Below, piece by piece: positions 23,248-45,100 of a stretch of 64,000 nt of DNA. A program made the position numbers and the translations under genes. Within the stretch, counting starts at the first letter, position 1. Each line of letters begins with the position of its first letter. Under the pieces are notes generated by a model. The model saw only the letters and a program-made list of their open reading frames with translations. It searched no databases and had not been told where the DNA came from. Source of the stretch: Schizochytrium sp. TIO01 (taxonomy: Eukaryota; Protista; Bigyra: Labyrinthulomycetes); contig SMSO01000008.1 in the NCBI GenBank assembly GCA_004764695.1, positions 620,001-684,000 on the forward strand, written 5' to 3'.

Positions 23248-24621
23248 CTAGCCGAACCCATAACCTTCAGTACATTCGTGAATAGCATACATCAGCTTTT
23301 CTTTGAGAGCTGCTTCAGTATTGTATGACGGCAAATCAAGTTGATTGAAGCATGAGTGCGATTGAGGAAGAGCATCATCACTTCCATATGCTTTATGGAT
23401 TGTAAAACGTTGTACACCGCGCATGCCGATAAGGTTTTTGAAACCATCGAGTGGAACTTTGGAGGTTCCTGTGACAAACATGAGAAAACGTGCGTGATCT
23501 TCAGATGGCAGAGCCTCGAGAGTTTTCCAGAACCAACGGATTTGCTGGCTTGCTGCGGTATATCCTACATACTCCGTGTTTGCTTTGAGATCGTCGAGAT
23601 CGATTTCAGGTACACCAGCAATGAGTAGCTCGAGTTCATTTTCGTCGAAGATGGAGATCAGTTCAGCTGGAACAAGCTCATGGAAACCCTCAAGAAAGGC
23701 ATCGAGCTGAGCCCGAATACCATTAGTCATGCGATAGTGGGTCACCAAACGAATATAATCGCGCTTGTTTTCTTCTGTCACAGGGACATTAGCTCCTCCT
23801 GGGAAGAGCTCTTTCGTGCGAACAGACCCAAAGACGTCAATGTCAGCAGAAAAGGTAAGATCGAAGCCGATCTCCTCAATGTTCATTTGTGTAAGCTCCA
23901 TAAGATTGCGGTAGTATTCTGGGTCGAGGCTTTGCATATCAGATGGTGTCACCTTGAGACCTAGAATATGCTTATAGAACGACCTCGTAAAGTGCGCGTC
24001 TAGTAAATGTCCATCAGCAACAGCTTTACCTACAATCCTGCCCACGAACTTGAAGTATTCCAAATGTCTGTCCACAGCAATAGACGATCTTGGATCCGGT
24101 TGGAATGCGCTGCTATCTGCCGACGGCTTAAACAGTCCATAATCCGGTTTGAACATCTCTCTCGCCAGGATCTGAAACCATTCACGCGTAGGTCCTCCAG
24201 CGTCGATGCCTTCTTCGCCATCAAATTTCACCGACAGTCTTCCTCGCAGCTCCTGTGCAGTATGATACTGCAAATACAAAAAGGAGTCCTCGAATACGTG
24301 CGAGCGACGCACAGTCAAGTTCACAGTTCCTGTGCGCACCGTTCGTCTCAGCTTGCGCATTTGAGCCACGAAGTATTGACGTTTGTTATCAAAATCAAGT
24401 ACAGAGCGACAATTTGGGTGCTTCAGCAAGCACGAGAATGAGTCGTCCAGGAGGGCTGGCGACTGGCTCACCAGCGAGTTCAACACATTTCCGTGGGCGT
24501 GTACGAATTTAAGCAAGGTTGCCTCACGCTTGTCGTGGGCACTGACCTCACCGCTCTTGGCACCACTGCCCTCGCTGCTCTTGCCGCCGGCATGGAGCTC
24601 GTCTAGAGCATCCAAATCCAT
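23248..24621 (-). CDS. Stand-alone HECT E3 ligase matching the C-terminal ~450 aa of HUWE1/Tom1/UPL1
   Basis: LKFVHAHGNVLNSLV...VLDFDNKRQYF, VRRSHVFEDSF, FDGEEGIDAGGPTREWF, FTRSFYKHILG, FVTGTSKVPLDGF, catalytic LPQSHSCFNQLDLP, C-terminal EGYGFG. The frame is open upstream only to a TAA at 24736-24738, so the 5' end is uncertain. Confidence 0.92.
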   Translation of the reverse strand: MDLDALDELHAGGKSSEGSGAKSGEVSAHDKREATLLKFVHAHGNVLNSLVSQSPALLDDSFSCLLKHPNCRSVLDFDNKRQYFVAQMRKLRRTVRTGTVNLTVRRSHVFEDSFLYLQYHTAQELRGRLSVKFDGEEGIDAGGPTREWFQILAREMFKPDYGLFKPSADSSAFQPDPRSSIAVDRHLEYFKFVGRIVGKAVADGHLLDAHFTRSFYKHILGLKVTPSDMQSLDPEYYRNLMELTQMNIEEIGFDLTFSADIDVFGSVRTKELFPGGANVPVTEENKRDYIRLVTHYRMTNGIRAQLDAFLEGFHELVPAELISIFDENELELLIAGVPEIDLDDLKANTEYVGYTAASQQIRWFWKTLEALPSEDHARFLMFVTGTSKVPLDGFKNLIGMRGVQRFTIHKAYGSDDALPQSHSCFNQLDLPSYNTEAALKEKLMYAIHECTEGYGFG

Positions 24622-26126
24622 ACCTGAGATTGATCCTGGAGTGCAACGCGAACGAGAGTCTGTGCGACTCGAGACGACCGTGTCACCGGTCGTTTGAAAA
24701 GCGTGAACTCGCTGTTGGGTGCAGACTCGCCTGCGTTAACTTTATCGTAGTGCGATGGGAAGTCTGATTCGGGATTGATGAAGATCAAAGATTTCTGTTG
24801 GCTTTGTTCCTTTGTCTTCTCTTCATCTCAGTTATTGTTATTATCTAGAGAGTTACTGTTTCAAGTAGACAATTATAAGTAAAGTATTCATGGTATAAGT
24901 AGGAAATAGAGGAATACATCCCTTGTGGTGGATAGGTTATACAGTGGGAAAGAAACGGGAATTTATTGCTTTCCCGGCTTGAAGACTCTTCAAAGAGTTA
25001 GCTCGAGCTAAATATCGGATCGGTTGCTCGAGGCCAGATGCCTGGTTTATAGGTGTTCTTTTGTTTTTAACAAAGAGGAAAATAGAGCTAAGCCTGGGCA
25101 TTTGTGTCTCAATTGTTTTAATGGTGCCACAGAATCGTATGTAATTAAAGATTACTTGAGAGCGCTTCTTCTGCCAAATATAACTATCCTCCCTCAAAAA
25201 CAGGTTTAAAGAGATGGAGAAGTAAGTCATTGACTTGAAAGCAAGAGCAGCGAAGAAAATCACAGACACGAGAGACGTTTATTCAAGAGACGATTGATTG
25301 GTATGTCAGCGCTCATTTTTGTCCTCGCTCACTTGTTTACAACCAATCTTCCAGTGACTCGCAAAAAAAAATTAAAAAATTAAAGCAGTTTGCTTCCCGT
25401 TTGTGTACAGTTATAATGCGATACATAGTTTTGCTAAGCCTACATGAATTTGGGCGCATTGCAAACCTGTTGTGCGTCTGCAATTTCTTTTTAAGTATGC
25501 AGAATACTTAGTATAGATGGATACTCACCAGCAAAACTTTTCATAGTTGCTCATGATGGTATTGGTGATCTAAAATAAGTGCGGACAGTCACAATATCAT
25601 TTGCAAAGCATTGTGACTTTTTAAAAGGCGTACAAATAATTACAATCACGTGATTGTGCATCTATGCGCCCTCCTAATCTTGAACCCAGCATACCTTAGC
25701 TTAATCTTAGTGCTTTGATTACGTACATCTATCAATCAAGCATAGATTTCACTGTTGAAAGGTTCTTCGAAACCTTAGTCCAACTGTGTAGAACAAACGT
25801 CATGTAAAAACTTGCGGCAACTCCAATCTCGATGGCAATAAAACGAAGAGCATAAAATTGATTTCATTGTTTTCTTCTGACTACATTAAAGCTAGACGAG
25901 CTAATCACAGCGTACTCTCCCGGTTGATTTGGATATGGTTTGTCTAATTAGATAGGGAAAATATATAGGGATAAGATTTTCGCCGAGCTACTCTGAACAA
26001 GCTGATCTTACAAGACAAGTTCTCCAAAAACTAAGGCAATTGTGAAGAAAAAATACTTTTAAGATATATTTGAATACAATAGAAAAATACTTAAAGCTTG
26101 GGCTTATAAGGGAAACTTTTAGGAAG

Positions 26127-27776
26127 CTACTCTAGCTCAAATTCGGTCTTCACAAGTCCTAGAGTTAGTAACGGCTCAAGCTTAGCTCTCAGAACACTTG
26201 GAAGACTTCTGCCTTGTATATTTTCACTCCAGTACATGCGCAGACGCTCCGTACGAATCACTCGCCACGCCTCATGCACCTGCTCTGGAAAGTCAGGATA
26301 ATATAAGTCATCACTAAGTTTTCTGTTGCAGTTTCTTACGTGAGCGTAGCAAGCTTCCTTGTCCTTGGAGCTGTATTCAAGACACCAAGCACAAAATCGA
26401 TGCCTGCAGCTATCATTGCCACAGATCACAGCACAACATCCATCAAATTCGTCAAAGCGAGCATTGCAATTTGGACAGCTCGTAATCAAGAGTTTTTCCT
26501 CTATGTGCTGCAAATGCATCTTTGCTTCTAAGCTCAGCCCACCTTCTTCAAGAACCACTGCCATGCGCTTTTTAATCTCCTCCTCGGCCCGAACTACAGC
26601 TTCGCTTTCCGCTTTCATCTGTGCGATCCGCAAAAGGTGTCTCAGAGCCCTTGGCGCAAGGCGCGCAATATCTTGGCCCATGATTCTTCCATCGCATCTA
26701 GCCTCCACGCATTCCATCGTTCCATCGGCACCCACAGTCACGGAGGCTTCTGCGTCCGTAGCAGCTTCTACTGAGCGTGCGATACAGTCCCGGCAAAGGA
26801 AATGTCCTCTCTCGCAGCACGTGCCCTCGGAAAGCGGGATGTCATCCAAGCATACAGGACATCTTACTAAAGGATTCGCGACAGCCCCGAATGTCTCAAG
26901 CGCTTCAACGGCACATGGACGATGCTCAGGATTTATCGCTTTGAGAGAGCTTATGAGTGTCTGCATTGCAGATGTTCGCTCACAGGGATACAGCTCCTCC
27001 AGGACTACACCCACAGAGTACATGTCCATCGCAGTTTCGAACTTGTCTACTGGTCCTGTCTGCAACTCAGGAGCAAGGTACCGTGGCGTCGCTTGAAGAG
27101 ATGTGTATGTTGCTGTGGAATTTGCTATTTTCATGCCATCGAAATCACCAAGCAGCGGGGTCTCGATATTCGCGAGGAAGATGTTCTCTGGCTTGATGTC
27201 GCAGTGTACGATGTTCAAAGCATGCAGGTCAGCCACCCCAATCAGTAAGCCCGAGGCAAGTCGATTACGCGTAACTTTATCTGCGTTGGGGTGCTTTTTA
27301 ATCCACTCCGCCAAGTTGCCTTGCTCGTAGAAAGGCATCAAAATGCATCCGTGTGGTACCCCATGTAAGATACTAACGAAGGCACCGATAATGCGGATTA
27401 CATGTTGCGAAGCTACCTTGCCTAGATTCGCAACTTGCGTGTAGAAAGCCCTAATTTGGTTCGAATGCTCGAGTTGAAACTGCTTCAGAACGAGGCTTCT
27501 GCCGGTGCTGTCTAATACCTTCTGTACCGTCTTGCCACCCCTTGAAGCCAGAAGCTTTCCAATAGGCTGGAAATCTGAAATTTCCACGTTCGCTAGCCAG
27601 AGATCAGAGCAAGCCACCTCAAGGACACCGTCTGCACTTACATGTACCTTTTCGAGCCATGCTTGGTTTTTTAGTAGTTCTGGGTAATGCTCCTGCGCGT
27701 GTTGCAGAGTTTCGGCAAGTTTATGACGAAATGCTTTGCTCAGTTCGATAGGACTGCCTTTGGAGAGTATAAGCTT
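26127..27776 (-). CDS. Kinase + RING1 + RING2-like (RBR-related) portion downstream of the in-frame stop
   Basis: Uninterrupted 550-codon frame continuing that of the upstream helical exon. The ORF-track start at 27617 is a GTG, not a true ATG. Confidence 0.75.
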   Translation of the reverse strand, partial: KLILSKGSPIELSKAFRHKLAETLQHAQEHYPELLKNQAWLEKVHVSADGVLEVACSDLWLANVEISDFQPIGKLLASRGGKTVQKVLDSTGRSLVLKQFQLEHSNQIRAFYTQVANLGKVASQHVIRIIGAFVSILHGVPHGCILMPFYEQGNLAEWIKKHPNADKVTRNRLASGLLIGVADLHALNIVHCDIKPENIFLANIETPLLGDFDGMKIANSTATYTSLQATPRYLAPELQTGPVDKFETAMDMYSVGVVLEELYPCERTSAMQTLISSLKAINPEHRPCAVEALETFGAVANPLVRCPVCLDDIPLSEGTCCERGHFLCRDCIARSVEAATDAEASVTVGADGTMECVEARCDGRIMGQDIARLAPRALRHLLRIAQMKAESEAVVRAEEEIKKRMAVVLEEGGLSLEAKMHLQHIEEKLLITSCPNCNARFDEFDGCCAVICGNDSCRHRFCAWCLEYSSKDKEACYAHVRNCNRKLSDDLYYPDFPEQVHEAWRVIRTERLRMYWSENIQGRSLPSVLRAKLEPLLTLGLVKTEFELE

Positions 27777-30700
27777 TTATTTTTTGATCTTACGCTCCAA
27801 GTATGCTTTATCATCTTCCTCTAGATCCTCCGCCTCAAGGTCTCTTTTGGCTGTTTTCAACCTTTCCGTCGCTATTCTCGACCTGTCCAGTTTCTTGTAT
27901 AGCGTTTTTACACAAGAGACATTGGTTGCTTTCAAACTCAACAGCATGCTGAAAGGTGATACTGATTAGCGTGAGGTTGACTGTAAAGATGAAGGTAGAA
28001 GGCTTGATGAAGGCTATAAGAAGGTTGCTTTAAGAGTTAGCGAACTGCTGTCCTGAGGAATGAATTCCAGGACAGATGGATTCATGTAGTAATTAGGGAG
28101 ATTAAGACATTCTTGAATGTGGTTAGAGATAATCGATGGGGTTAGGTTATCCAACCTTCTCCACCATCGATCCAAGCTAACCAAGCTTGGGTGTCGGTGA
28201 TGTGTATTCACACTTCTAGTTCTTGGCTTCAGCAGCCACATAAATCTGGCTGCTTATTCTTGTTCTAATGTAAACCTTATTTCTAATGGGTTTTACAAAG
28301 GGACACCAAGAACTCTAGCAATGTCTTGTCCACTAATTCCTTCGATTGGAGATCTCACCACAGCATAAAGTCGTATAACTCCTCAATATCATCCAGTGAA
28401 AGCGGGATAGCTTCATCTACCTTGAAGTCTTGCGTTGAGTTTTCCAAAGCATTTAATGCTGAGACGATATCGCGCAGTGCTTCTATCACTGTGTCACGAA
28501 GCGTATCCCCTTTTAGATCTTCAAGCTCTTCCTGCAGAGCATTTTGAAGTTCGGAAGGCTCGGGCTTCAGCCTTGTGGCCTTTTCAGGCTCCCTCATAGC
28601 TACCCTAAATTCGTCATCAAGTCTCAACTCACTCATTCGCAGGATGAGCCTTTCCATTGCTTCCTCGCTTCGTTGACTGGCGTTCCTCTGACGACTACTT
28701 TGGCTCGCCTTGTACTCTTTAACGCACTTGTCAGCCCGACCAAGCAACGCCTGGCAGTCTTTGAAGTCAGCCGTGCATGCACGCCCAACCAACGTTGCTC
28801 GACTTATGCCGAGTTCCTGCAATAAACTGGAAAGCCTCTCCTTAAAGCCACGAACTTGAACCTTATTGCTTTCGTAGAACCCAGTCCGAACCCAAGGGTA
28901 CACACTTTGCACGAGTAAATGCAGGCGCGTTCTTTCATCGTTCCACTCCGCAATGAGCTGCGATAAGCCAGCCGGAATGCTTTCACGAATCCGGGCTTGG
29001 CAAGATTCTAAACGTTCTTTGGACTTCGTGATGTCAGCAGCCAACATCTCTTGAACAAGGTAGCCTTGAATCACTGGTCCTGCGAACTCCTCAAACAATG
29101 CAATTGCGGTCTGCAGAGAGTCTTCTCTAGCCACACCACAGCCTGCCCGCGTGTGCGAGACTTCCTTGGCGGGCTGCACCACGTCAGCAAAACTCACTCC
29201 AGCCATGTCCGGCACTTCTCTGAGATATGGTTAGCGAAACGCAGTAACAGCAGATGCTCAAGTCAGGATTCTATACGACAGGTGCTTCAACAAACAATCA
29301 AACTTACAATATAGCATTTTTCGAGTTCTTGGGCTTTGCACAAGGTTCGTTCACCTCGTCAATGCAGACACCAGAATCACTGTCTGGGGCTGCAATACCC
29401 TCTCCAAGAGTACACACCTTTGCAAACAATTCTTTTGGGGTTAGGTCGTAACCAAAGTCACACCTGTGTCAAATCAATCAAATGTTCAATACAAAGACTC
29501 GTGAGAACAACAATTCGTGAATTCCAAGACAGCCTTTCAGCTCCAGCATCGACGTTGATGACACGGCAAAGCAAAACGTGACAGCTAGCTGCGGAGCAGA
29601 AGTAGCGACGGCGGAACTTACCAGGTTTTAACATTTGGGCATGTTTTGTGCAGGGATTTAGCAATTGCCTTGGCGCCGTCAATGTCGATGCTATTGAGTT
29701 CGAGACTGTGTGGTTACCAATAAACGATTGTAATGTCACAGCACGTCAGTTCACTGCGTTCAATTCCCGTCGATATTAAGCTACAGCAATATTCTGCTTC
29801 AGTATCGTTTCCTGTCTGCTTTGTGTTCGATCTTGAAATTTGACGAATGGCCGCTTCGGTTGTTGCTCTTTACCATCGGTCTCTCCATTTATTTCCTTTG
29901 TTCCTCGTGCTAATAATTATTCAGGGCTCTCCCATTCCCTCTTTTCTTTCTCGCTCTCTGTTTTCTTCTTTCTTTTCTTTTCTTTGAAGCAGAGTCTCTC
30001 TCCAAATTTTGAATCTCAGCGCGCAGCTTTCTCTGAATTCTACAAACGTACTTTAGTTGAGTAAGGTTTTTGCATCCCTTCAGTACTTCGGCGATTGCCT
30101 TTGCGCCCTCACTGCCAATGTTGTTATCGCGAAGACTGTGTAATAAATAGAAAATTCCATATTCGTTGTGCAATACAATTATCTCGAGTCAGTCACTAGG
30201 GTGTCTTCAATACTACAACTCAGCGCTCCTCTTGCACCACCAAAGGGCCCCAAACAATGCTCTCAACATCATGTTCTATCTGTGCCATATTCCTGAACTT
30301 CTTCTTTCCTCATTCAATGAAACCTTGTGCATTCTATTCCCATGACATCTCATCACTGTTGCTCTCTTTTGCTCTATTCTCGAAAACACTTCTTCAAGTT
30401 TTATCGCTCAATCTTGAAATCCATGTTCTAAAGTTTTACCTGTCTTCACAAGAAGACTTCCCACTTTATCAACCTAACAACTCAGCGCAGCGCAACTTTC
30501 GATTCTGCAAACGTACTTCAAATGTGTCAGATTCTCGCATCCCTCGAGAGCGTTGGCGACAGCCTTTGCGCCCTCAGTGCCAATGTTGTTCTCGCGAAGA
30601 CTGTGTAATCAATAGCAAATTTCATATTCGTTGTGCGATACGATTATTATCAGTGCGTCAGTCAGTCAGTCAGTCAGTTAATTGCTTTCACGGCTGCGTC

Positions 30701-33700
30701 TCAACTTCTTCTGCGAAGCAATACTTCTACAACTTCACAACGCTCATTCTCTGCTTTTGCATTCTCTGCTCTCTCCGTCTTTGCATCCTTCGTTCTCAGC
30801 ATTCAAGTTCTACTCATCGTTCTTTTACTCTTCTTCTTCTTTACTTCCTCTTCTCAGCATTTGTTCAAAGGAACCCTTTTGCAACAAATACTTTCTCTCT
30901 TTGGTTCATCTTCTTTCTTTCCGAGTCGATCATTGTCTTTTACTTTTAGCATTTCGAAGCCTCAAATGGAATGAAATGCCAAAAAGTAGTATTTTTAAAA
31001 CGTACTACAATTCATTGAGGTTTTTACATCCCTTCAGTACTTCGGCGATTGCCTTTGCGCCCTCACTGCCAATGTTGTTCTGGCTAAGACTGTGTAATCA
31101 ATAGAAAATTCCATATTCGTTGTGCAATACAATTATCTCGAGTCAGTCACTAGGGTGTCTTCAATACTACAACTCAGCGCTCCTCTTGCACCACCAAAGG
31201 GCCCCAAACAATGCTCTCAACATCATGTTCTATCTGTGCCATATTCCTGAACTTCTTCTTTCCTCATTCAATGAAACCTTGTGCATTCTATTCCCATGAC
31301 ATCTCATCACTGTTGCTCTCTTTTGCTCTATTCTCGAAAACACTTCTTCAAGTTTTATCGCTCAATCTTGAAATCCATGTTCTAAAGTTTTACCTGTCTT
31401 CACAAGAAGACTTCCCACTTTATCAACCTAACAACTCAGCGCAGCGCAACTTTCGATACTGCAAACGTACTTCAACAGTGTCAGATTCTCGCATCCCTCG
31501 AGAGCGTTGGCGATTGCCTTTGCGCCTTCAGTGCCAATGTTGTTGCCACCAAGATTGTGTAATAAATAGCGAATTTCATATTCGTTGTGCGATACGATTA
31601 TTATCAGTCAGTCAGTCAGTCAGTCAGTCAGTCAGTCAGTCAGTCAGTCAGTCAGTCAGTCAGTCAGTCAGTCAGTCAGTCAGTCAGTCAGTCAGTCAGT
31701 CAGTCAGTCAGTCAACTTCTTTCATGTCTGCGTCTCAACTTCTTCTGCGAAACAATATTTCCACAACTTCACAACACTCATTCTCTGTTTTTGCATCCTT
31801 CGTTCTCAGAATTCAAGTTCTACTCATCGTTCTTTTTCTCTTCTTCTTCTTTATTTCCTCTTCTCAGCATTTGTTCAAAAGAACCCTTTTGCAACAAATA
31901 CTTTCTCTCTTTGGTTCATCTTCTTTGTTTCCGAGTCGATCATTGTCTTTTAGCATTTCGAAACCTCAAATGGAATGAAATGCCAAAAAGTAGTATTTTC
32001 AAAACGTACTACAATTCAGTGAGGTTTTCGCATCCCTTCACTACTTCGGCGATTGCCTTTACGCCCTCAGTGCCAATGTTGTTGTCACCAATACTGTGTT
32101 TGGGTACATCATACGTTTCGCAATCCAATTAGTACGAGTCAGTCAATCCCTATTACTCTCAAGTCCTTCCTTCTTCTCATGTCCTCAGAGAAGTAACAAT
32201 GTCTCTCTCAGCGTCGTTCTTCGTTGTCTCTGCAATATTCATCCGCACTTTCAAAGTCACCACTTTCGTAGAATTGCGATTTCTCACTTTGTTATTGCTT
32301 TTTCCCAAATCATCGCATTTTGCTTATTCTTCTTTAATTTGTGAAAAAAGAGTCTTCTTTAAAGATGATCATAATATCTTCCTTCGCTCTTTCTTCTGTG
32401 CGTCTCTTTTCTTACGTTCTCCCATTCTCTCTTTCCGAACCAAAACGCATCGATAGCAGGTTGGTACCATAACTACTGCGCAATGTAGGTTCTATACGAT
32501 CATAAAACATACCCCAGCCCTGTCAGACTATCACAGTCTTTCAGTGCGTTTGCGACGGCTTTGATGCCCTCTTCGCCAACGTGGTTCTGGTAAAGACTGT
32601 GTCAATATCATTAGTTGTGAGAAGAGAATAGTTTCCAAAGTTAGTAAAATACTGCATTTTACTTCTCAAGTCTTCTTTACCATCAAAAAACTCCAATCGC
32701 AAAACTCTCTCTCTCTCTCTCTCTCTCCCTTTCTCTGTCTCAGGAACAGTTGCTCTCGATAGTATCCCTTATCTCGAAGAGTCCCAACATTAGATTGCTT
32801 CTGTATTTGCTATGCACTTCATCGTTGCTCTGTAACTTCACTCCGATTACACCTTTCTTCTCTTTTTACTTTTCTTTTCTGTTTTGTCCCATAACGTTTT
32901 TAAATTAAAAGAATTCGCTCTTCCTCTTCTTTTCTTTTCCTTCTTAAAACAAGACCCCATCACAACTACCAAACTCTTTCAAAGCACATCCTTCTACATC
33001 AATCAAACGTACTGTAACTCAGTGAGGTTTTCGCATCCCTTCAGTACTTCGGCGATTGCCTTTGCGCCCTCAGTGCCAATGTTGTTCTCACCAAGACTGT
33101 GTAATCAATAGCGAATTTCATATTCGTTGTGCGATACGATTATTATCAGTCAGTCAGTCAGTCAGTCAGTCAGTTAATTGCTTTCACGGCTGCGTTTCGA
33201 CTTCTTCTGCGAAGCAATACTTCTACAACTTCACAACACTCATTCTCTGCTTTTGCATTCTCTGCTGCTCTCTCTGTGTTTTTGCATCCTTCGTTCTCAG
33301 AATTCAAGTTCTTCCTTTTACTCTTCTTCTTCTTTACTTCCTCTTCTCAGCATTTGTTCAAAGGAACCCTTTTGCAACAAATACTTTCTCTCTTTGGTTC
33401 ATCTTCTTTCTTTCCGAGTCGATCATTGTCTTTTAGCATTTCGAAGCCTCAAATGGAATGAAATGCCAAAAAAGTAGTATATCTAAAACGTACTACAATT
33501 CAGTGAGGTCTTCGCATCCCTTCAGTACTTCGGCGATTGCCTTTGCGCCCTCAGTGCCAATGTTGTTCTCACCAATACTGTGTTTGGGTACATCATACGT
33601 TTCGCAATCCAATTAGTACGAGTCAGTCAATCCCTATTACTCTCAAGTCTTTCCTTCTTCTCGTGTCCTCAGAGAAGTAACAATGTCTCTCTCAGCGTCG

Positions 33701-35219
33701 TTCTTCGTTTTCTCTGCAATATTCATCCGAAACTTCAAAGTCACCACTTTCGTAGAATTGCGATTTCTCACTTTGTTATTGTTTTTCCCCAAATCATCGC
33801 ATTTTGCTTATTCTTCTTTAATTTGTGAAAAAAGAGGCTTCTTTAAAGATGATCATAATATCTTCCTTCGCTCTTTCTTCTGTGCGTCTCTTTTCTTACG
33901 TTCTCCCATTTTCTCTTTCCGAACCAAAACGCATCGATAGCAGGTTGGTACCATAACTACTGCGCAATGCAGATTCAATACGACCATAAAACATACCTCA
34001 ATACACTGAGACTATCACAGTCTTTCAGTGCGTTTGCGACGGCTTTGATGCCCTCTTCGCCAACGTGGTTCTGGTAAAGACTGTGTCAATATCATTAGTT
34101 GTGAGAAGAGAATAGTTTCCAAAGTTAGTAAAATACTGCATTTTACTTCTCAAGTCTTCTTTACCATCAAAAAACTCCAATCGCAGAACTCTGTGTGTGT
34201 GTCTCAGGAACAGTTGCTCTCGACAGTATCCCTTATCTCGAAGAGTCCCAACATTAAAGCAATAAGTAGATTGCTTCTGTATTTGCTATGCACTTCATCG
34301 TTGCTCTGTAACTTCACTCCGATTACACCTTTCTTCTCTTTTTACTTTTCTTTTCTTTTTTGTCCCATAACGTTTGTAAATTAAAAGAATTCGCTCTTCC
34401 TTCTTTTTTTCCCTCCTTGAAAGAAGACCCCATCTCAATTACCAAACTCTTTCAAGAATCGAAGCACATCCTTCTACATCAATCAAACGTACTGTAACTC
34501 AGTGAGGTTTTCGCATCCCTTCAGTACTTCGGCGATTGCCTTTACGCCCTCAGTGCCGATGTTGTTGCAATCGAGGCTGTGTTGGTGTCAGTTATTGAGC
34601 AACACAGGAAATACACGTCAGTCGGTCGACTCCTTCCATGTCCGGGTCTCAACTTCTTCTGTGAAGTAAGACATCCACAACTTCACAACACTCATTCTCA
34701 TTCTCTGATTTTGCATTCTCTGCTCTCTCCGTCTTTGCATCCTTCGTTCTCAGCATTCAAGTTCTACTCATCGTTCTTTTTCTCTTCTTCTTCTTTATTT
34801 CCTCTTCTCAGCATTTGTTCAAAAGAACCCTTTTGCAACAAATACTTTCTCTCTTTGGTCCATCTTCTTTCTTTCCGAGTCGATCATTGTCTTTTACTTT
34901 TAGCATTTCAAAGCCTGAAATGAAAGTCCAAATAGTAGACTTTTCACAACGTACTTTAAAACCCGCAGGTTCTCGCAGCGCTCCAGTTCATGCGCAAGGA
35001 CCTGAGCCTGCGCAGCGCATATGTTCTTGCTTTCCAGCCTATGTTTGTTGGAGATCAAAGCATGCAATTCTCAGTTCATCAGTACAAAGTCTTCGTTTTA
35101 AAAGTAAACTGTTCAAAGGCCATGCATGCCTCGATCAGTCTACTCCGCTCTCCAACATGCACTTACCTCACCTCCGTCGTATCATTGGTGATTGCCTTGA
35201 TACTCCGTGCAACCGTCAT
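26127..35219 (-). CDS. Multi-exon LRR (RI/NLRC3-type, 12 x 28 aa)-helical/coiled-coil-Ser/Thr kinase-RING1-RING2(Rcat)-like protein, with one in-frame TAA
   Basis: Exons (minus strand): 35219-35167 (MTVARSIKAITNDTTEV). 84-nt LRR exons: 35038-34955, 34576-34493, 34080-33997, 33577-33494, 33096-33013, 32596-32513, 32093-32010, 31554-31471 (acceptor AA), 31089-31006, 30600-30517, 30135-30052, 29705-29622. Then 29463-29308, 29219-28359, 27948-26127. Introns are phase 2 and GT-AG apart from the one AA acceptor. Kinase motifs LVLK, HCDIKPEN, GDFDG, YLAPE, DMYSVG. RING CPVC...CERGHFLCRDC...CVEARC. RING2-like CPNC...FDGCCAVIC...FCAWC. In-frame TAA at 27779-27777. Confidence 0.8.
27947..28360. mobile_element. 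Solo-LTR-like element (414 bp, TG...CA) with 5-bp TSD CAGCA, functioning as a predicted intron
   Basis: CAGCA at 27942-27946 and 28361-28365. Ends TGCTGA...TCACCA form an imperfect inverted repeat. Removing the element and one TSD restores colinearity with the paralog. A sister copy lies at 37113-37518. Confidence 0.75.
30052..34954 (-). repeat. Tandem array of duplicated intron+LRR-exon units (intron types B-D-C-B-D-C-B-A-B-A in transcription order)
   Basis: 30136-30516 ~ 31090-31470 (period 954). 32094-32512 ~ 33578-33996 and 32597-33012 ~ 34081-34492 (period ~1484). Type B introns at 30601-31005, 31555-32009, 33097-33493, 34577-34954. Confidence 0.9.
31605..31712. repeat. (CAGT)27 microsatellite inside an LRR intron; shorter alleles at ~30652-30678 and ~33147-33174
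   Basis: Direct reading of the sequence. Confidence 0.95.
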
Positions 35220-36399
35220 CGCCTTTGAGCCTTATCTTTGAGCAGACGTATCACGCTTTCCGTCTTATGCGTTTCTTTCTTTTGCACGATCAAGATCAGA
35301 TTGCCTGCTAAAACAGCACCTCGGACTTCAAAGTCTCAAGGAACAGCGGACTCCACGTGAATAAGCGCGAGTGTCTTTGCAGAGCAGAACAAGCCCGTCT
35401 CCGAATCAATGCGACGATGTGGCTCAAGAGAAGTCGCGGGTGAATTGAGGACGCTCGCTGCCTTCTGTTCACGCTTTGCTGGCTTCGGGGAGAATACATA
35501 TCTCCCCCTTTTTCCTACCTTCTTCTGAAGGTCCGTTGGATCAACTTTTTCCTGAGAGCGCAAATGCTAAAAATGGATCCTAGGAGTTGACCCTTAAGGC
35601 AACTAATACGGCACTACGCTTGTACTGGGTGGTAGTAATTGGTTGCGTTGCATAGACGGCTTTGGAAGAGGGCAACTACAACTATTTAGTGAACACATAA
35701 ATGAGGATAAGTCGCTGGTGGTATCCTTTTTGCTTTGAGTAGGTGTCAGTGATAATGAAAGCCTGCCATGTGTGTAAATGTCAGTAAGCAAGGTACTTGT
35801 GGTTTCTCTCAACACACCCTTGAGTTGAGGCCGTCTTTATGAGTTTAGTGAACGACATATTTGTTCAGATTGCCTTTCATGGAGTGATCGTGCGAAGTGT
35901 TAGAGAAAGACTTGCAATATCATCGTTATTACCGTGACTAGAGAAGCACGCTTAAGACCATATAGTCTTCGAGGAGAAGGAGGAACCACCTACGAACAAA
36001 CAACTTTTTGAAACAGAAGAACACAATACATACTCAAGAGACGCCGCAACAGTTCGACTCGCAGTTGTCGACCAGACCTCGATATAATTTGACCATAATA
36101 TACAATCCTAAACCTCGGCGAGAACAACAAATTCTCAATTCTAACGCAGAGCACTTCTTAACCATTTAATAATCTTCTTGATACTCTTTATCTCACTATT
36201 GAATTTGCACAACCACGATCCAGTAATAGTTATGCAACAAACAAGAACGATAGCAGACAGCTGACAGCTTCTAAAATTGAAAAAAAGTAAAAAAATCTAA
36301 GGATCTCAACTTACATATTTATTATCCCTACTGAAGTTTTGAAACGTGTATAGCCTTCTGTGAAAAGATTCCCCTCTTCTTAAAAGCTTCGTTTTTCGA

Positions 36400-39300
36400 T
36401 TAGTACTACCTTGTGAGCAATACTCCAGATACTGAACACAAAAGCAAGACATGCGCAATCTTAGCACATGATAGCACAACATTCATTGATGCGAACAAGT
36501 GCCGCAGTTCGGACAGTATGTATCCAGGATTATCGTAAGTACCACTACGAAACGTGACCCTGTCCATCTGGCTGTAGAATTTTGAAATCGTACTCCGCTC
36601 TAGCTTCCCTGGTGCAGTTTATCAGCGACATCGAATGCTTTGTGTTTTAGCTTTTCTTTAAAACTTTGCCTTGCATAGACAGCCTCTCGGTGCGTCACAC
36701 ACGAGCTGCTTCGTTTGCATTGATGGTTGCTAATCCATCGCGCTACAATCCACATCGCTTATTGAAATGATTGTGCGGCTCTTTGTTAGCCACATCTTCG
36801 AGCTCATATTGCATCCATGGAGAAATATTGCTTAGACTCATAGCCTATTCACAGATAGGTCTAGATTAACAGTAGATTAACAGTACCCGAGCTGAATTTG
36901 TTTGCCAACCCCTACCATGCCAGTATTGACACCCCTGTATCGGCATCGGCGAAAACCTCTATAACAGACTGTAAATACGCAATTCCGATATTCTCCATCA
37001 AAGTATTCATTTAAGCTATTTTTATGACTTCCTTTGCATGACTTCCGGACCAGATTTGCTTTTCCAACGCCTTTATTACATGATCCCACGCCTGTTGCAG
37101 AATTCCTGTAAATGCTGAAAAATAAATCTGATCAGCTAGAGGTTGAGTATTAAGATAAACGCAAGACGCTGGGGAATGCTTGAAGAAAGCTTGGTAAATA
37201 TAAATTTAAGACTTAGCGCTCTGATATCCTTAGAATTGGATTTCAGGACAGACTGATTCAGGTTGTAATGAGGAGACTAAGAAACACTGGGTTTGTGTTA
37301 GAAAACATAATTGATGATGTTAGGCTACCTCTTCTCTTCAACCATCAGTTCAGGTTCAATCATACTTGATTCTAGCAACTTTGTAAGTACAATTTCAGTT
37401 CCTGCCTATCTTCAGTTCACAACCACGTATCTGATTGTTCTGATGCTGCTCTAAATCCTTGACAGTGGAATGTCAAGAACTGTAAGTCCACTACTTCCTT
37501 CAATTGAAGCTCTTAGCAGCAAGGTCGCGAGACGATTGACCGAGCTCGAAACGAGCGCCTCCAAAAAGAATAAGCTATCGGCTATGGTTTTGACATACAC
37601 AATAATCTCGGTCCTTCTCGTTCAAATCCTCAGCCTCGAGGTTCCCTCTGATTCTTTTCATACTTCTCGTCGTTCTTCTCGATCCTACAAATTTCTTGTA
37701 GAGATCTTCAACATCTACAATATTTGGTTTATCTGAACAAGAACTTATATACTTGTGTAGCTCACTGATTATCCCCGGTAAGATACTAGGCGCTACGTTT
37801 AATGCATCACCTTCGGCATAGTCTTCAAATCGACGGATTATTAATCTTATTGCACAAAGTATTGTCAACACTTGGGCACTAAGTATATCCCTTCTGAGGA
37901 CTTCAACTTCTTCATTGAGATCATCTTGAAGTTTGTGTGTTTGCTTTGCAGCTGTTTTGTATCTCCTGAGAGCATTGCAGAATGCATCATCGAGTCCTAG
38001 CTTGCTTTCAAAAGCACCTTCGTTATGTTGTTTAAAACATTGTTGTCGGGTCTCTTTATTTGTCTTATACTCTTCAACGCACTTATTAGCCTGAGTGACG
38101 AGATCCTGGTATTGTGAAAACTCAATTTTGCATGCCCATCTGGCAACTATTGCATCACTTATGTCTTGATCTTCTAACAGACTGGCAAGCTTTTCTTTGA
38201 ATACATTCACTATGGTCTTATTACTTTTCGAGTATTTAGCTAGAGTCCATAAGCTCATATCTTGCTCGATTAGTCCCATGCGCTCTTTTTCGATATTTCA
38301 CTTTTCGATGAGTATGGACGAGCCAGCCAAAGATCTTCTACAAATTTGGCATTTGTTGTCCAGCAAGCGCTCGAGAGAATGTTTGAAATATCTGGAAATT
38401 TGCTGCCGCTTCACTTGGACAAAGTAGTTTTGGATTGTAGGTTTTGTAAACTCCTCAAGCAAGACAATGCCGATCTGCAGAAACTTTTCTCTATTTCCTG
38501 CAAGTCCCGCGCGCGAGGCTAGGACTTCCTCAACAGCATTTGTGCTCGGCTCATTTGGCAGCTTTCTGAGGCAATGAGTAAACGAAGCAGTAACAAATGA
38601 CATGACTAAGTAAGCATCCAAAATATTCCAATCCAAAATACATAAGAAATTACTGAGAACCAATCATCAAACTATCAAGCAATAAACTTACGCAAAATTT
38701 TCGGAACTACAGGGACTCGTAACAGCCTTAACTTCATCTTCCTCTTCCTTCGGCTTTGGAGAGGGCTCGCTTGCCCCGTCCATTGAGACATAGGAAACCG
38801 TATCCGAGGTTTCGAGGTTTTCTCCTGGGATACATACCTTCGCAAACAATTCCCCGTTGGAGTCATTTTGCCACCAAATTCAAACTTGCGCCACATAAAT
38901 AAAGAATTATAACATTCGTGAGAATAACAATGATCTCATCTAAACATGGCCCCGAGATTCTCTCGAAAAGGTGAGAACCAGCAACCTCAAGTCTGCTCTG
39001 AAGCTGCGAGCAGTATTTGACTTACCAAATTTGAACAACACTGCATCTTTTGTGCAGAGCTCTGGCAATATCCTTAGCGCCCTCTTTGCCAATGTTGTTC
39101 TCCTGAAGACTGTGAATATTTAATTCCATGTGAAGACGACCCAGGCCAAGTTAGTATGTGAATGTCAATCTCGAGCGCTTTTGCGCTGCCATTAAATACA
39201 ACTGCCTCACGGTTTGAGGCTAATTCTGTATTATAAGGATATGCTGATGGGTCGCATATAGTTGTTTATGTTGGTAATCTCTGCTGTTATATTCTTGTTG

Positions 39301-42125
39301 TATATGTGTGCCAAGCTAAAGGAAACTTCGCTGCATGATTTTCACATAGATGTAGGAAAACGTACTCTAATACTGTCAAGCTCTTGTAACCCTTTAGAGC
39401 TTCGCAAAAGCCCGCCACGCCCTTCATACGAATGCCATTCTTTGAAAGACTGTGAGTGTTTCATTCGTTGTCCAAAAACTTAGTTAAGTTAGATAAGCGT
39501 TTTCAGACCCGGGCTAGCTTAGAACGCTGTCTCACAAAAACTCCGAAGTCTCCTATATTCGTAGGGTATTGTTATTTCTTAATTATTTCTTGGGTCTATG
39601 CACCGCTTTGAGTCTGACAAATTGTGCTACCCCTTTCTCAGAAAGTATGTTTTTGGTTGCCTCGAGGCTGTGCATCTCCTCTTCTATATATTGAAATGTA
39701 TCTTTCCATTGATGAATGTACCCCAAATATTTTAGGTTATTACATTCCACCAGTGCCTCAGCAATAGAATTGGTACCCTCCACGCCAATGCTGTTCTGAT
39801 CAAGACTGTGCGTATGCCATGCCATTCATTGTCGATAAATCGCAAGTTAGCCTAACGCTACAAGTCCCAAACTCCCATATTTGCACCATATCCCACTACA
39901 CCTAATGTATAGTATTCTTAGCATTTGATGAGTGAATATTTTGGTTCGTGTTTCTTACTTTGGTTTTGTGTTTGCTCTGCGGTCTAAACTGAACATTCTT
40001 GCATGCTGTCTCTATGTTATGGTGTTTTTCTCTCGCTGTTTTTCTGATCTAACAAGTATTTCATTTTTTTTCTTCGGAACATAGCTCTGCTTCAAAAAAA
40101 CGTACTACAGTTTTGTTAGGCTCTTGCATCCCCGTAGTACTTCAGCGATGGCCCTGGCACCTCCTTCGCCAATGTTGTTCTGATTTAGACTACGCCTCAA
40201 TTGTTGTCAATAAAAGTTAGTAGTTGAGTCCAATCAATTTTTTAGAAGCTGTGTTATCGCAGAAGATCACCGAAGCAGTTTTGCTAACCATCCTATATTT
40301 AAGAAAGCACCCATTGACCGCTTTGATTCTTGTTCAAAACTATCATTTGTTCTGCTGCTGAAAACCAATACAGGATTCTGTAGATAGAACGTACTAAAGT
40401 TGCGTCAGCTTTTGACTGTCCTCCAGCGCCTTGGCCAAAGCCTTCGTACCCTCACTTCCAATATTGTTTTGTGAAAGACTGTGTTGATATTGATCGTCAA
40501 GAAATTTCAGTCAGAAGCGGTCTACCTTTAACACGCCCATGCTATTGTGAGTGTTGTCTCACCTCACATCTCTGCTTTTGCTTTTTCAGAATCCATGCAC
40601 AGATCTATTCTGATCGTTTAGATTGTTATTATTTTCTTCACTGCATTTTGCTCTGCTCCATTTGAATAGTTTGTTTTGACTTATCACCCTGGCTAGGTGA
40701 GGTTCTTACTAGCCATGGTTTTTGCGTGCTCTATTCTTGGAACCTCTTTTCAGGTTACTTAACTCTTTGATTCTGTAATCCCTGCTTCACTTTGAAAACC
40801 GGATTTCATTTTTTGTTGTTCATAGGTATTATTCGTTAATTAAAGCGTACTTTAATTCCGATGGATCCTTGCATCCCTTCAGTGCCTTAGCAATTGCCTT
40901 TGCACCCTCGGTACCAATATTGTTATGCGAAAGACTGTGAGCGATTTAATGTATTCAAGCCAAGAATTGCTAAGTTATTACGTGGTTTCGATCTCACAGG
41001 AGCACTGTCTCGCTCCAGCTCACGGCCATTTCGCTTTTCTATATCTGGCTGACTAACTGTGTTGATCCAAGCATTATTCTCACTTCGGTAGTTTGCTTGA
41101 AGACCCTGTTTAAGCTTGTCTTAAGTCGTTGTACACTTTTAACAAAGAATAAGTATATACGTGTTATTGAACATACCTCAAAACTGCTAGGTCTTTGCAT
41201 CCCTCCAGTACCTTGGCAATGGCCATGGCGCCTTCTTCGCCGATGTTATTCTGATCAAAACTGCGAGTATAACATTCATATCAAGGAATTGCAAGTTAGC
41301 TCAATGTTCTGAATATAGACCTTCTGTGCTTCAACAAAACACCATCGCAGTCTTTGTGGCTGCCCGTTTTGTATCGTCAGCATATCATATGCTAAGTGAT
41401 TATACTAGTAAGGTGAGGAAAGCAATCCTGGATTGGCACAGCATGGAAATCTGATCACTTTCTTGTTTTGAAGTTTGCCTTGACTATGTGATGTCTCCTG
41501 ATAAAGAAAGGAAGAAGGTATATGTTCTTATCAAACTTTTTGTCAATATAACGTACTACAAACTTCTCAAATTATTGTATCTCTCTAGTACCCTGGTGAC
41601 AGCAATAGTGCCCTCTGTACCGATGTTATTTTCATCGAGACTGCCGTGACTTTATTTGTAGCTTAGACAATGCATGTCAGTCATTTACCTTCCATCTGAA
41701 CCGCTCATACATTAATATTGAAAACCAAACATATTCGTTATCTTCTCAGCATGAGCTTTTCTGATCACCCTAGTTCTTGGCCTTTTCATTGCTCAGTCCT
41801 TAAAAACTTCTTTCAGGTTGTCTATGGGGAGTATTCTGCATTGTGTCCTTCTACTCCAAATAATTCGATAAAACGTACTCCAATACTGTAAGGTCTTTGC
41901 ATCCCTCTAATGCCAAAACGAGGATATCGGTGCCTACAGCCCCAATGTTATTGTTCTCCAGGCTGCGTTTGTTGAACAGGGGATGTGATAAACAACTAGT
42001 GCTTATGTAAAGCTCATATATAAAACATTAAAGGTGGATGACATGCTCGTCCTATTGACTCTCGTTACATACTATACTTCGGTTGTATCCCCCCTGATTT
42101 CCCAAATGCTTTTTGCCTCATTCAT
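36400..42125 (-). pseudogene. Paralog of the LRR-kinase-RING gene: intact first exon and 9 LRR exons, decayed effector half
   Basis: First exon 42125-42073 (MNEAKSIWEIRGDTTEV, 53 nt like 35219-35167). 84-nt exons: 41962-41879, 41640-41557, 41260-41177, 40934-40851, 40478-40395, 40189-40106, 39805-39722, 39449-39366, 39109-39026. The next exon has an AA acceptor (38887-38886) and a frameshift. TGA at 38300-38298, TAG at 37577-37575, LTR insertion, most of the kinase missing. RING2 relic (CPNCGTC...FCVQYLEYCS) at ~36410-36530. Confidence 0.8.
37113..37518. mobile_element. Diverged second copy of the solo-LTR-like element (406 bp, TG...CA)
   Basis: Colinear blocks shared with 27947-28360: TGCTGAAA...CTGAT(T/C)AGC..GAGGTTGA, TT(C/T)CAGGACAGA..GATTCA, GTTAGG(T/C)TA, GTCCACTA(A/C)TTCCTTC(G/A)ATTG. 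Flanks GTAAA/GCAAG look like a degenerate TSD. Confidence 0.7.
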
Positions 42126-45100
42126 TGTTTTATGGTGTTGATTTCGAGCCAATTTGTAATTCTGTTCGCCTTGTCTTCAGCTTGTCGCTCTTAAGATCAG
42201 TGTCTCTGCTTTAAGTGACGATGACAACTAAGGCAAGGAAAATTCACGCGAAATATTTCACAAATGCATACGCATATCCACGAAGTACTTGCAGCGGTGA
42301 GATATCGAACAAGTTACGGTTTTGTCGAATGCACCCGCTGCTTTAATCTGAGGACTCAAATCTGTGGTTTTGACAAGGCTATATCTTCTTTCGGTGTGTT
42401 GAATCAATTTTTTAAAGAGCGCTGTATGTCAAAATTGAATTCTACAAATTGGTGGTCTTTGTTATAACTAGAACTTTTTGCAGATCAAGGAGAACCAAAG
42501 CCATTTTGAATGAGCCAGCGGAACTCGCATGTGGTTCACTCTAGATCTGGGTTGGACTGTAGGTATGCCAAGGTCTTCACCAAGTAGAAGAATCGGATAT
42601 CCTATTTGTAGTCTAGATAGGGTGAGAAGTAGTAAGCAACACTAAGGCTGCTCTTAGTCATCCTGCAAGTACTTCAAAATTAGGTACCTACAAATTCCCC
42701 TCTCGCTCCTTGGAAACTAGCTACTGCCTCATCGAACTATTTCTTGTTCACAGCTCGTTGGAATTTTGAAGAACCAAAATACTCAGAGAACTCTGAGGAG
42801 TTTGCATGGGTTTTCCCAACATCTGAAGACTGATTTTCTTTTCTTTTTTATTACTTTCCCCTAGTCTTAGCTATAAGGTAGCTAGCTATCTACATCATAA
42901 TGGTACACTCCTATCTTTGATGATGGGCTATCATTATGTGTATAGGCATCATGGTCAAAGCATGTAAAAACAATCACGTGAAGAGGTTTTGTTCGTTGTG
43001 TTAGTTCCTAGCAATCCAATCTGCCAAACTCTAGTTGGAGCCATGCTTAGTTTTACCCGAATTCTTATCCAAGCAGTGAAGGCATTGCGAAAGTAGCCTC
43101 CAACGAATGCGAGAGACTCGAATCTGAAATTGGATTAGCAAATTAATACCTCTGGGTATACCAATAGTAGATGCCTTTGCGCAGTTATAAAACAGCAGAG
43201 ACTGCTGGGGACACCACACGACATCAACTTGAACTTGAGTAGCGCTTGACCTAGCTTCATTAAAACCATCCCTTTTCGAGCAAGACATTGGAATTGCCTG
43301 TATCCAATTTGATTTGATCAGCTTGATCGCCTCAAGCAGTTGGTCCACTTTGCACGCTACTGCAACCGATAAGTCGTGCGTCCATCCTGGTCACATGGTG
43401 CGTCGCTGGAGTGTGTGTGAGTGTGGGTCCTTCAAGTTATACATTGGTCTCTCAGTAACTCCCAAAATCATGATCCAAGCTCGAATCTTGGAAACTGCTT
43501 GCACTTGTCAATTGTCCATAGCTCAAGCCATCCATCCATCCATCCATCCATCCACATTAGCACATCGCGTGATGATGATTCTCTTCCTGGAGACAAGCTC
43601 ACCCGTGACAATGACTGCCTGACCACCAAAAAGGCCCTCGTCTCCAGATTAGTATCCTCTTTCATTGCCGTGATCATGAAACAGCACCATCTTCGTACTG
43701 CCGATGCTGATGGCTGTTTGGCCAAATTCTTTCCGGAGTGCGTGGTGGAAATTCCACATCTAAATTGGTGATTTGCTGTGAGTGAAAACAAACCTCGAGG
43801 GACTTTGTGTTGTTCGCATGATTTGTAAAGCCAAGAGTGCAACTAGGCAATGCTCTGCAAGTCCAAGTATCGATATGAGTTTGGCTCAAAGACCATTTCT
43901 CCAAAGTTAAGGCTCTATTAAAGTGTACGAGGTGAACGACCTTTCGGTTGCCGTTTTAAAGTTGGTTTGATTTGATCTTGAGATTATCGATAGAGCAATT
44001 CATTCATTTTGGCTGTAGGCAATCTAGTTGACGACCAATCTCGTGATAATTGATTCTCGCGAAGCCGATGCTGGTCCCTTTACTGATCGAGATGGGGAAG
44101 AAAAAAGAAAGGAACAGAATAGAATAAAATAGAATAGAATAGAATAGAACGGAACAGAACGGGCGTTCTAGTCTGGGAATTCTAGGAAAGAACTTGAATA
44201 GAAAAAAATACGAAGAGATCGAACAAACCTTGAAAGAGAGTCGCTCGTTCTTCAAGGTCCTCCCACACTATGATAGCAACAAAAGAGTATCAACCTCTTC
44301 AGAACGGGATGAAAGATATGAGAATATGTACTGCTACCTGGCTTTATGGCAATGTGCAAACGTGTGCTGCTACAGATCCGGAATATGTTTCCAGTGAAAA
44401 CGTGTTTTTTTAGTTTGTTTTTTAATGATCGCATATCAGAATTTCTCCCGTTCTAATTGGGATCCACAATTCTTAAGTAGTGTGCTATCATTGTTACCGT
44501 AATGGCGTTATAAAATAATAATAATAATAAATTAGGCTATATATATATATACACGTATGTACATAGCATAAGAAGTTTTCTTTTTTCCTTTCTTATGACA
44601 AGGTTACATTCTTGTCAATGTTTTTGTTCCAATATTAAAACGCTGCTCTAATGAATGATTGATTCGAGTAGCACCTAGACAATTGGTTATAAGCCCCAGA
44701 GCCTCTGCCAGTGAACGTATTGAGCACTTTGTCGATTGTTGATGCAGCTTTCGAATACCCCTATCACTATGCAAAGCTGCCTCTGTTGTGGTGGGACATC
44801 ACATTTCCCTCTACTTAGAATAAAATATTTTAATTTTAGTTTCCAGTACCAATCAATATATGACAAATTAAATTATATAATTATAAAGAGACGAATTCTA
44901 GTTTCTCACGTTCTTTGTTTTGCTTTCCTGCTCTTCACTTCAAGTGCGAGGTTCGCTCATCACGGTACTTGCACATTGAAACTATACAGCTCATAAAGCC
45001 CTCGGCCCCAAGCCTATATTGATGCCGTATCCACGAGACCACGCCTATCTCCAAGTTTCTTGCATGCCTCTGAAGCCGATCTCCTCCACATTGAAGCGAG

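Follow-up and report, generated by a model that had tools for sequence, protein, structure and literature searches.

The closest described counterparts of the gene analyzed here are receptors whose leucine-rich repeats (LRRs) are encoded one per exon. In human NOD/NLRC proteins, one 28-residue LRR is encoded by each frame-preserving exon, and the exon border occupies a fixed place in the beta-sheet (PMC6642158). In Ectocarpus and other brown algae, LRR-ROCO and LRR-kinase genes undergo exon duplication and shuffling, and both positive selection on the concave face and an immune role have been proposed for them (PMC3341825, PMC11378527). The present study concerns a gene of Schizochytrium sp. 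TIO01 that carries an array of twelve 84-nt LRR units on the minus strand of a 64,000-nt stretch of contig SMSO01000008.1 (positions 620,001 to 684,000), hereafter the window, which corresponds to C7:620001-684000 of the 64.07-Mb genome in 37 contigs. We propose, with a probability of roughly 0.7, that this array would form the N-terminal, ligand-binding half of a protein from a large gene family, in which the number of LRR exons differs between close paralogs and the codons of the predicted binding face change faster than the adjoining introns.

Does the gene belong to one of the known systems? Judged from its sequence, it is a member of neither the NOD/NLRC, the ROCO nor the VLR class, yet its exon design and evolution parallel those of known systems. 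The gene resembles the vertebrate NOD/NLRC genes (NOD1, NOD2 and NLRC3 class) in its RI-type 28-residue repeat, in the encoding of one repeat per frame-preserving exon and in the exon border inside the beta-strand. It differs from them in having no NACHT or other NTPase, in the N-terminal position of the array, behind which come a helical domain, a kinase and a RING/Rcat-like region, and in belonging to a much larger family with arrays of variable length. Membership in the NLR class was rejected: the exon design agrees, but no NTPase family (NACHT/NB-ARC) was retrieved from Pfam or NCBIfam for the helical and kinase pieces, and only 17 residues precede the LRRs. With the brown-algal LRR-ROCO genes (Zambounis et al. 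2012; Front Plant Sci 2024), the gene shares a stramenopile host and one LRR per exon. In contrast to those genes, it lacks a Roc-COR GTPase, uses an RI/NLRC-like 28-residue repeat, has a kinase and a RING/Rcat-like effector, and contains introns that were copied together with their exons and can be used as a neutral clock within the gene. Assignment to ROCO was likewise rejected, given that neither Roc nor COR has a Pfam match and that the fold search with the helical domain retrieves nothing beyond generic helical bundles, all at Z scores under 8.

In plant NLRs, RLPs and RLKs, the solvent-exposed xxLxLxx residues are hypervariable and unequal crossing-over alters the repeat number, as also cited in PMC3341825. 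Hypervariable strand residues that are predicted to be exposed and a change in repeat number are common to this gene. Plant LRRs usually lie in long exons and form 24-residue repeats, and plant RLKs are transmembrane (TM) proteins, whereas no hydrophobic segment is found here; a plant-type LRR receptor kinase was rejected since Kyte-Doolittle profiles reveal neither a signal peptide nor a TM helix. The germline VLR genes of lampreys and hagfishes are incomplete, and flanking cassettes are added to them by somatic assembly. An LRR cassette is the unit of receptor diversity there, as it is here, but the germline gene in the window is complete and spliced, and the tested strand patches have no donor copies. 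VLR-type somatic assembly was rejected on the completeness of the array, the GT..AG borders of 11 of its 12 units and the single-copy state of four patch haplotypes. Within the thraustochytrids, the genome paper on Aurantiochytrium limacinum describes LORE-TEARS spacer repeats of 366-529 bp that have no similarity in GenBank, and leaves LRRs unmentioned (bioRxiv 10.1101/2023.06.15.545109). Those tandem units are comparable in length to the 430-540 bp units of this array, which is located ~0.65 Mb into contig C7 and not beside ribosomal DNA.

The exon array and the predicted protein

The array occupies positions 29622-35038 and was delineated by a Python script that scanned the window, followed by inspection. 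The scan, which required AG-(84 nt)-GT with an open reading of one base, 27 codons and two bases, retrieved eleven LRR-like exons. It passed over E8, the twelfth unit, because E8 is preceded by AA instead of AG, and this unit was found by inspection. Each of the twelve units consists of one base, 27 codons and two bases, is in phase 2 on both sides and is free of stops, and each is followed by a GTACGT, GTATGT or GTAAGT donor. Among ~100 family exons inspected, the AG acceptor is missing only at E8; strictly, the array thus comprises eleven canonical units and one defective unit.

Every unit encodes one 28-residue LRR of the RI/NLRC type. The ten internal exons match the consensus LxxNNIGxEGAKAIAxxLxGCxNLxxL, and E1 and E12 are divergent caps. 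A period test against the RI-like/LRR_6 repeat (Pfam PF13516), which has a period of 28-29 residues, gives 28 codons in 12 of 12 units and agreement with the LxxLxLxxN(x)IGxxGaxxLaxxL consensus. When searched singly, five of eight exons match LRR_6 in Pfam with E values of 5e-4 to 5e-3 and 17-20 bits, scores that fall below the whole-protein cut-off of 23.4 bits because one repeat is scored at a time. Motif mapping places the intron in the x5 codon of LxxLxLxxN, between both strand leucines, and each strand is thus predicted to be built from two exons. The first base is G in E1, C in E2 and T in E3-E12. Only three of the 144 ordered exon pairs create a stop in the junction codon, each with E1 placed after an exon that ends in TA. 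Because no such pair exists within E2-E12, any skipping or reordering among these exons would keep the reading open.

This anatomy largely bears out a preliminary description of the locus, which had listed twelve 84-nt exons of phase 2-2, placed the intron inside the LxL beta-strand and noted that the internal exons begin with T or C and can be skipped or reordered in frame without a stop. These points hold, with the caveat of the AA acceptor at E8. The consensus that it gave, xLxxNNIGxEGAKAIAxxLxGCxNLxxL, fits the ten internal exons and does not extend to the two caps. Its comparison with the 84-nt exons of NOD/NLRC genes and the exon-shuffled LRR genes of brown algae is apt (PMC6642158, PMC3341825, PMC11378527), and the gene does look like one for a modular recognition protein, with hypervariable codons on the predicted binding face.

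The gene as a whole spans 26127-35219 and encodes, after the N-terminal LRR array, a helical domain, a Ser/Thr kinase and a RING/Rcat-like region (Table 1). The 17 residues before the LRRs are non-hydrophobic, and the N-terminus is therefore predicted to lack a signal peptide. For the N-terminal, linker and helical pieces, the highest 19-residue Kyte-Doolittle mean ranges from 0.02 to 1.1; within the kinase fold it reaches 1.7. As no hydrophobic or TM-like segment and no signal-like start is found in any piece of the gene, a cytosolic protein is predicted. The kinase domain matches Pfam Pkinase with an E value of 8e-27, and its best solved relatives in the PDB are ordinary Ser/Thr kinases (~1e-13). 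The Cys-rich tail gives weak Pfam matches to Sina_RING (0.003), zf-RING_2 (0.017) and IBR_2 (0.087), and its Rcat-like cysteine pattern was read by eye; a comparison with the RING1-IBR-RING2(Rcat) plan of RBR E3 ubiquitin ligases goes no further than these signs.

The helical domain has a Pfam match in none of 21 paralogs. An AlphaFold2 model built from these 21 paralogs has a pLDDT of 76.7; Foldseek finds no PDB structure for it at E<=0.001, and the top VIA-align Z score of 7.8, to BAR-like bundles, is in the noise range for helical proteins. A four-helix bundle of the MLKL/HeLo type was considered and rejected, as the 21 paralogs give no Pfam match to it and the fold searches do not return MLKL. 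The sole lead in that direction is one Atlas cluster at 0.87, of whose members 10% carry MLKL_N.

Table 1. Coordinates of the gene, its exon array and neighboring features, given as positions within the 64,000-nt window
Feature	Position	Strand	Basis or remark
Upstream tandem paralog, nine canonical 84-nt LRR exons	39026..41962	-	84-nt exon scan
First coding exon (inferred)	35167..35219	-	ATG at 35219; 17 codons + 2 bases; GTAAGT donor
E1, divergent N-terminal cap LRR exon, begins with G	34955-35038	-	84-nt scan
E2, begins with C	34493-34576	-	84-nt scan
E3	33997-34080	-	84-nt scan
E4	33494-33577	-	84-nt scan
E5	33013-33096	-	84-nt scan
E6	32513-32596	-	84-nt scan
E7	32010-32093	-	84-nt scan
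E8, acceptor AA in place of AG	31471-31554	-	inspection
E9	31006-31089	-	84-nt scan
E10	30517-30600	-	84-nt scan
E11	30052-30135	-	84-nt scan
E12, divergent C-terminal cap LRR exon	29622-29705	-	84-nt scan
E2-E7, two copies of a three-exon super-unit	32010..34576	-	E2 I2 E3 I3 E4 I4, then E5 I5 E6 I6 E7
E9-E11, with E8 two copies of a two-exon super-unit	30052..31089	-	
(TCAG)27 microsatellite in intron I7	31604..31714		shorter copies in related introns I4 and I9
Linker exon, 156 nt	29308..29463	-	both splice junctions in 345-nt contigs of runs X1 and X2
All-helical domain, ~290 residues	28358..29231	-	profile, fold and cluster searches
Insertion of ~400 nt, absent from paralogs (lesion 2)	27948..28361	-	comparison with closest paralog open reading frame
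In-frame TAA, CAA (Gln) in the two closest paralogs (lesion 3)	27777..27779	-	between helical domain and kinase
Ser/Thr kinase, then Cys-rich RING/Rcat-like region, 549 open codons	26127..27776	-	Pfam

Gene family, array growth and strand-codon change

The gene is one of many. The genome contains at least 55 full-length kinase-RING paralogs at >=60% identity, mostly as open frames of ~925 codons. A genome-wide census of the LRR exon core, a step already envisaged in the preliminary description, gives 1401 matches to the NNIGxEGAKA pattern and 0 for the reversed control, and the pattern is thus not a product of chance. The two closest paralogs are 84-86% identical in the amino-acid sequence of the kinase and carry 26 and 7 LRR exons, compared with 12 here, with the same caps and the same exon types; E1-type cap exons also begin the arrays of the paralogs on C35 and C32. 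Public relatives of an 889-residue paralog open reading frame (ORF) number only three, at 50-55% identity, all in Logan assemblies, and for Aurantiochytrium or the labyrinthulomycetes the literature search yielded no account of LRR genes. The family is probably a large, lineage-specific group of cytosolic proteins with LRRs, a helical domain, a Ser/Thr kinase and a RING/Rcat-like region, fast-evolving and receptor-like.

The introns record how the array grew. They recur in classes that remain in register (I1/I4/I7/I9, I2/I5, I3/I6 and I8/I10, with I11 alone), and the likeness within a class is as high as 96% for I2/I5 and 97% for I3/I6. The array plan is therefore a cap, a three-exon super-unit in two copies, a two-exon super-unit in two copies, and a cap. 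The repeat unit is an exon with its intron of ~400 nt and measures 430-540 bp. E9 is a mosaic whose core is of the E11 type and whose 3' end and intron class are those of E4/E7, as is expected from crossovers within the conserved exon core. Unequal crossing-over of exon-plus-intron units is the evident mechanism by which array length changes, given the 26, 7 and 12 exons among the closest relatives with shared caps and exon types. The in-frame and stop-free design of the exons follows automatically from the duplication of one symmetric exon.

Between paralogs, the introns have diverged beyond 85% identity, whereas the exon cores are ~90% alike, and the intron classes of this array differ from those of its closest paralogs. 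Because the introns diverge more than the exon cores between paralogs, they behave as neutral sequence and can be used as a clock. Conserved intronic RNAs were rejected as the cause of the near-identical introns: Rfam gives no match anywhere in 25000-43000, and the introns outpace the cores between paralogs.

Against this clock, the codons of the beta-strand stand out. The strand patch was defined as the 22 bases that flank the intron (exon nt 73-84 and 1-10; 21-22 nt), and rates were compared over 15 non-overlapping nearest intron pairs from three close paralogs. The introns of these pairs differ at 2.3%, the adjacent exon half-cores at 2.6% and the strand patches at 12.7%; the patches thus carry 5.5 times more change than the introns (odds ratio 6.2, P=4e-17). 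Individual pairs display the same contrast. Across 381 bases, introns I8 and I10 show 2 differences, compared with 5 of 22 bases in the patch and 0 of 62 in the core, and in the C35 paralog two adjacent introns of 372 nt are identical although 6 of the 22 bases in their flanking patches differ. A clustered replacement affects 7 of 11 patch bases between E3 and E6. The excess of patch change over the intron clock is solid.

Most of the variable positions fall on the predicted binding face. Over 82 internal exons, entropy peaks at codons 26, 2, 3, 8 and 22 and at the split codon. Codons 26, 2 and 3 and the split codon correspond to x3, x7, x8 and x5 of LxxLxLxxN, and codons 8 and 22 lie in the neighboring loops. 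Changes in the patches are rich in transversions, with a transition-to-transversion count of 15:27 versus 85:54 in the introns (P=0.005). By the Nei-Gojobori method, the patches have a pN of 0.16-0.19 and a pS of 0.21-0.26, with an intron divergence of 0.03-0.04. A formal claim of dN>dS was set aside, given that pN/pS in the patches is ~0.75. Templated micro-conversion was also considered: four patch-plus-splice-site haplotypes are each unique to their own site in the 64-Mb genome, which leaves donor-based replacement unsupported for those four. Diversifying selection for new binding surfaces is most likely the cause of the patch excess.

How would such an array evolve as a binding surface? 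We propose that units of an exon and its ~400-nt intron multiply and vanish by unequal crossing-over, which would shift the repeat number fast between paralogs and probably between strains. After duplication, four or five solvent-exposed strand codons astride the intron would change faster than the introns or the exon cores. The resulting diversity would not be made within a cell; it would reside in the germline and at the population level, in the manner of plant R genes and of the LRR-ROCO genes of brown algae. The frame-preserving exons would be a by-product of duplication that makes exon gain, loss or skipping harmless. From the architecture, we infer that the protein is a sensor with an immune role.

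Several side observations stand apart from this proposal. The closest paralog (C35:2425500-2445399), with its 26 LRR exons, contains a five-exon super-unit repeated ~5 times. The (TCAG)n tract occupies the same place in related introns and ranges from 7.2 copies (33146-33174) to 27.8 copies (31604-31714), which makes it a rapidly changing marker of length by which unit duplications could be dated. The plus strand at 30000-34000 is strongly asymmetric, with a GC skew of -0.27 to -0.30 and an AT skew of -0.18 to -0.22, the introns being purine-rich on the coding strand. Downstream of the gene, a 457-residue ORF at 23248-24621 on the minus strand is HECT ubiquitin-ligase-like in its C-terminal part, as read by eye from the translation.

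Transcription, lesions and competing explanations

Transcription was assessed with contig sets of four runs that are RNA-like, with a word content close to that of exons alone; no run on record as RNA contains the stretch. The contigs come from related strains, are 95-99% alike to the window, were compared over 29300-31603, the 3' end of the array, and cannot reveal rare isoforms. Contigs of 345 nt in runs X1 and X2 connect E12 with an E11-like exon (29705|30054) and with the linker, and the linker with the helical exon. These junctions fall at the predicted borders, with CT..AC ends that correspond to GT..AG on the minus strand. The introns are uncovered in the RNA-like contigs, save for one low-depth contig over I8, and E8-like exons are spliced exactly at the 84-nt borders in the transcripts of related strains. 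In X4, the short unitigs of very high depth represent cores common to the whole family.

Not all exon neighbors in these contigs follow the window order. In X4, an E3-type exon is joined to an E8-like exon, and in X1 and X2 an E3-type exon leads to an E11-like exon, and an E11-like exon leads to an E8-like exon and then to an exon that starts with LQQ. The contigs also carry exon variants that are absent from the window, with starts of TSG, LQQ and IGG. The differing neighbors suggest strain-level differences in the array or expressed paralogs.

Four points weigh against the proposal of a binding half that diversifies in the germline. The RNA evidence stems from related strains, not from the sequenced strain, and covers the 3' end of the array only. 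Silent-site divergence (pS) is raised in the patches as well, so that selection on amino acids alone is not formally demonstrated and local mutation or conversion could contribute. A sensor or immune role is predicted from the architecture, and the helical domain has no assignable fold. Finally, this copy seems to be decaying or truncated and may not make a full protein.

The last point leads to the alternative that fares best, namely that the gene is a pseudogene or a truncated decoy-like gene of which only the LRR and helical part, or nothing, is made. This alternative is plausible, although we place it below even odds. The E8 acceptor is AA instead of AG, and in the sequenced strain E8 is probably skipped with the frame kept, or the transcript is mis-spliced. 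The ~400-nt insertion terminates the helical frame at 28355-28357, so that the reading beyond the helical domain is interrupted unless splicing removes the insertion, for which several in-frame GT..AG pairs are available. The TAA between the helical domain and the kinase, in place of the CAA of the paralogs, may leave the kinase half untranslated in the sequenced strain. The neighboring tandem paralog is likewise without a kinase: its LRR exons are followed by two broken helical-domain-like ORFs at 37575-38663, and a kinase search found no kinase/RING half downstream of them. However, all twelve LRR units and the 549 kinase/RING codons are still open, and dN/dS of the kinase half is ~0.35 on the branch to this copy, relative to the paralogs. 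The open frame and this ratio argue that the lesions are recent, strain-specific or assembly errors, and both point lesions could be of the latter two kinds. Furthermore, an orthologous or near-identical gene is transcribed and spliced in related strains. Given at least 55 copies in the genome and three likely lesions in this one, the term "system" used in the preliminary description overstates the locus.

A second alternative holds that the symmetric 84-nt exons are skipped in varied combinations, so that one gene would yield many LRR solenoids of varied length and surface. All combinations of internal exons are in frame and stop-free, the loss of AG at E8 did not break the frame since skipping one unit would keep it, and alternative splicing has been proposed for human NLRP3 and for brown-algal ROCO genes (PMC6642158, PMC11378527). 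Against it, no exon-skip junction occurs in the RNA-like contigs of the four runs over 29300-31603, from which rare isoforms would escape, and duplication alone accounts for the frame symmetry. Two apparent skips, of 1345 and 388, were rejected as exon skipping; both represent one junction between an E8-like exon and its LQQ-starting neighbor, placed on E11 or on E9. Splicing is most likely constitutive, and combinatorial skipping is unlikely. Diversification by alternative splicing, as envisaged in the preliminary description, thus finds no support in the adjacent-type junctions of the RNA-like contigs.

Programmed diversification of the DNA, whether by somatic or clonal recombination of cassettes or by targeted hypermutation or micro-conversion at the strand codons, is the least probable of the explanations: although it would accommodate the 5.5-fold patch excess, the contrasts of 5/22 with 2/381 and of 6/22 beside identical 372-nt introns, the raised silent-site divergence of the patches, clustered multi-base replacements such as 7/11 between E3 and E6 and the other exon adjacencies in the transcripts of related strains, it is opposed by the four patch haplotypes that are unique in the 64-Mb genome and have no donor cassette, by a complete gene with canonical GT..AG at 11 of 12 LRR units, unlike the incomplete germline VLR gene, by the lack of an adenine or cytosine bias among the listed changes, by the conservation of some patches between paralogs at dS ~0.2 and by the single array form in the assembly. 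The suggestion of DNA rearrangement in the preliminary description thus stands on the evolutionary scale, as seen in the 7, 12 and 26 exons of paralogs and the adjacencies of related strains, and is unsupported as a somatic or clonal process in a gene that is complete. That targeted change at the strand codons, by hypermutation or very short conversion tracts, or exon-skipped isoforms would generate a clonal repertoire of LRR surfaces is very unlikely.

A candidate recognition repertoire in thraustochytrids

Thraustochytrids are marine decomposers that harbor persistent mirusviruses (PMC12606086). One-LRR-per-exon receptors with hypervariable binding faces are known in animals, plants and brown algae and have not been described from thraustochytrids. 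In the family to which this gene belongs, an NLRC-type LRR array is combined with a kinase and a ubiquitin-ligase-like module, and the family comprises ~1400 repeat exons in a 64-Mb genome. Its duplicated introns provide a built-in neutral clock, which makes the family well suited to measuring the rates at which binding-face codons change.

To this picture, the locus contributes a chromosome-internal and partly decayed member, splicing at the predicted borders and the contrast of 7, 12 and 26 exons; it contributes no evidence of generated, adaptive-like diversity. If targeted change or an isoform readout were true, the clonal repertoire drawn from one gene would amount to a counterpart, in a unicellular organism, of generated immune-receptor diversity. 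As a germline family, it would be a new, independently built candidate repertoire for innate recognition.

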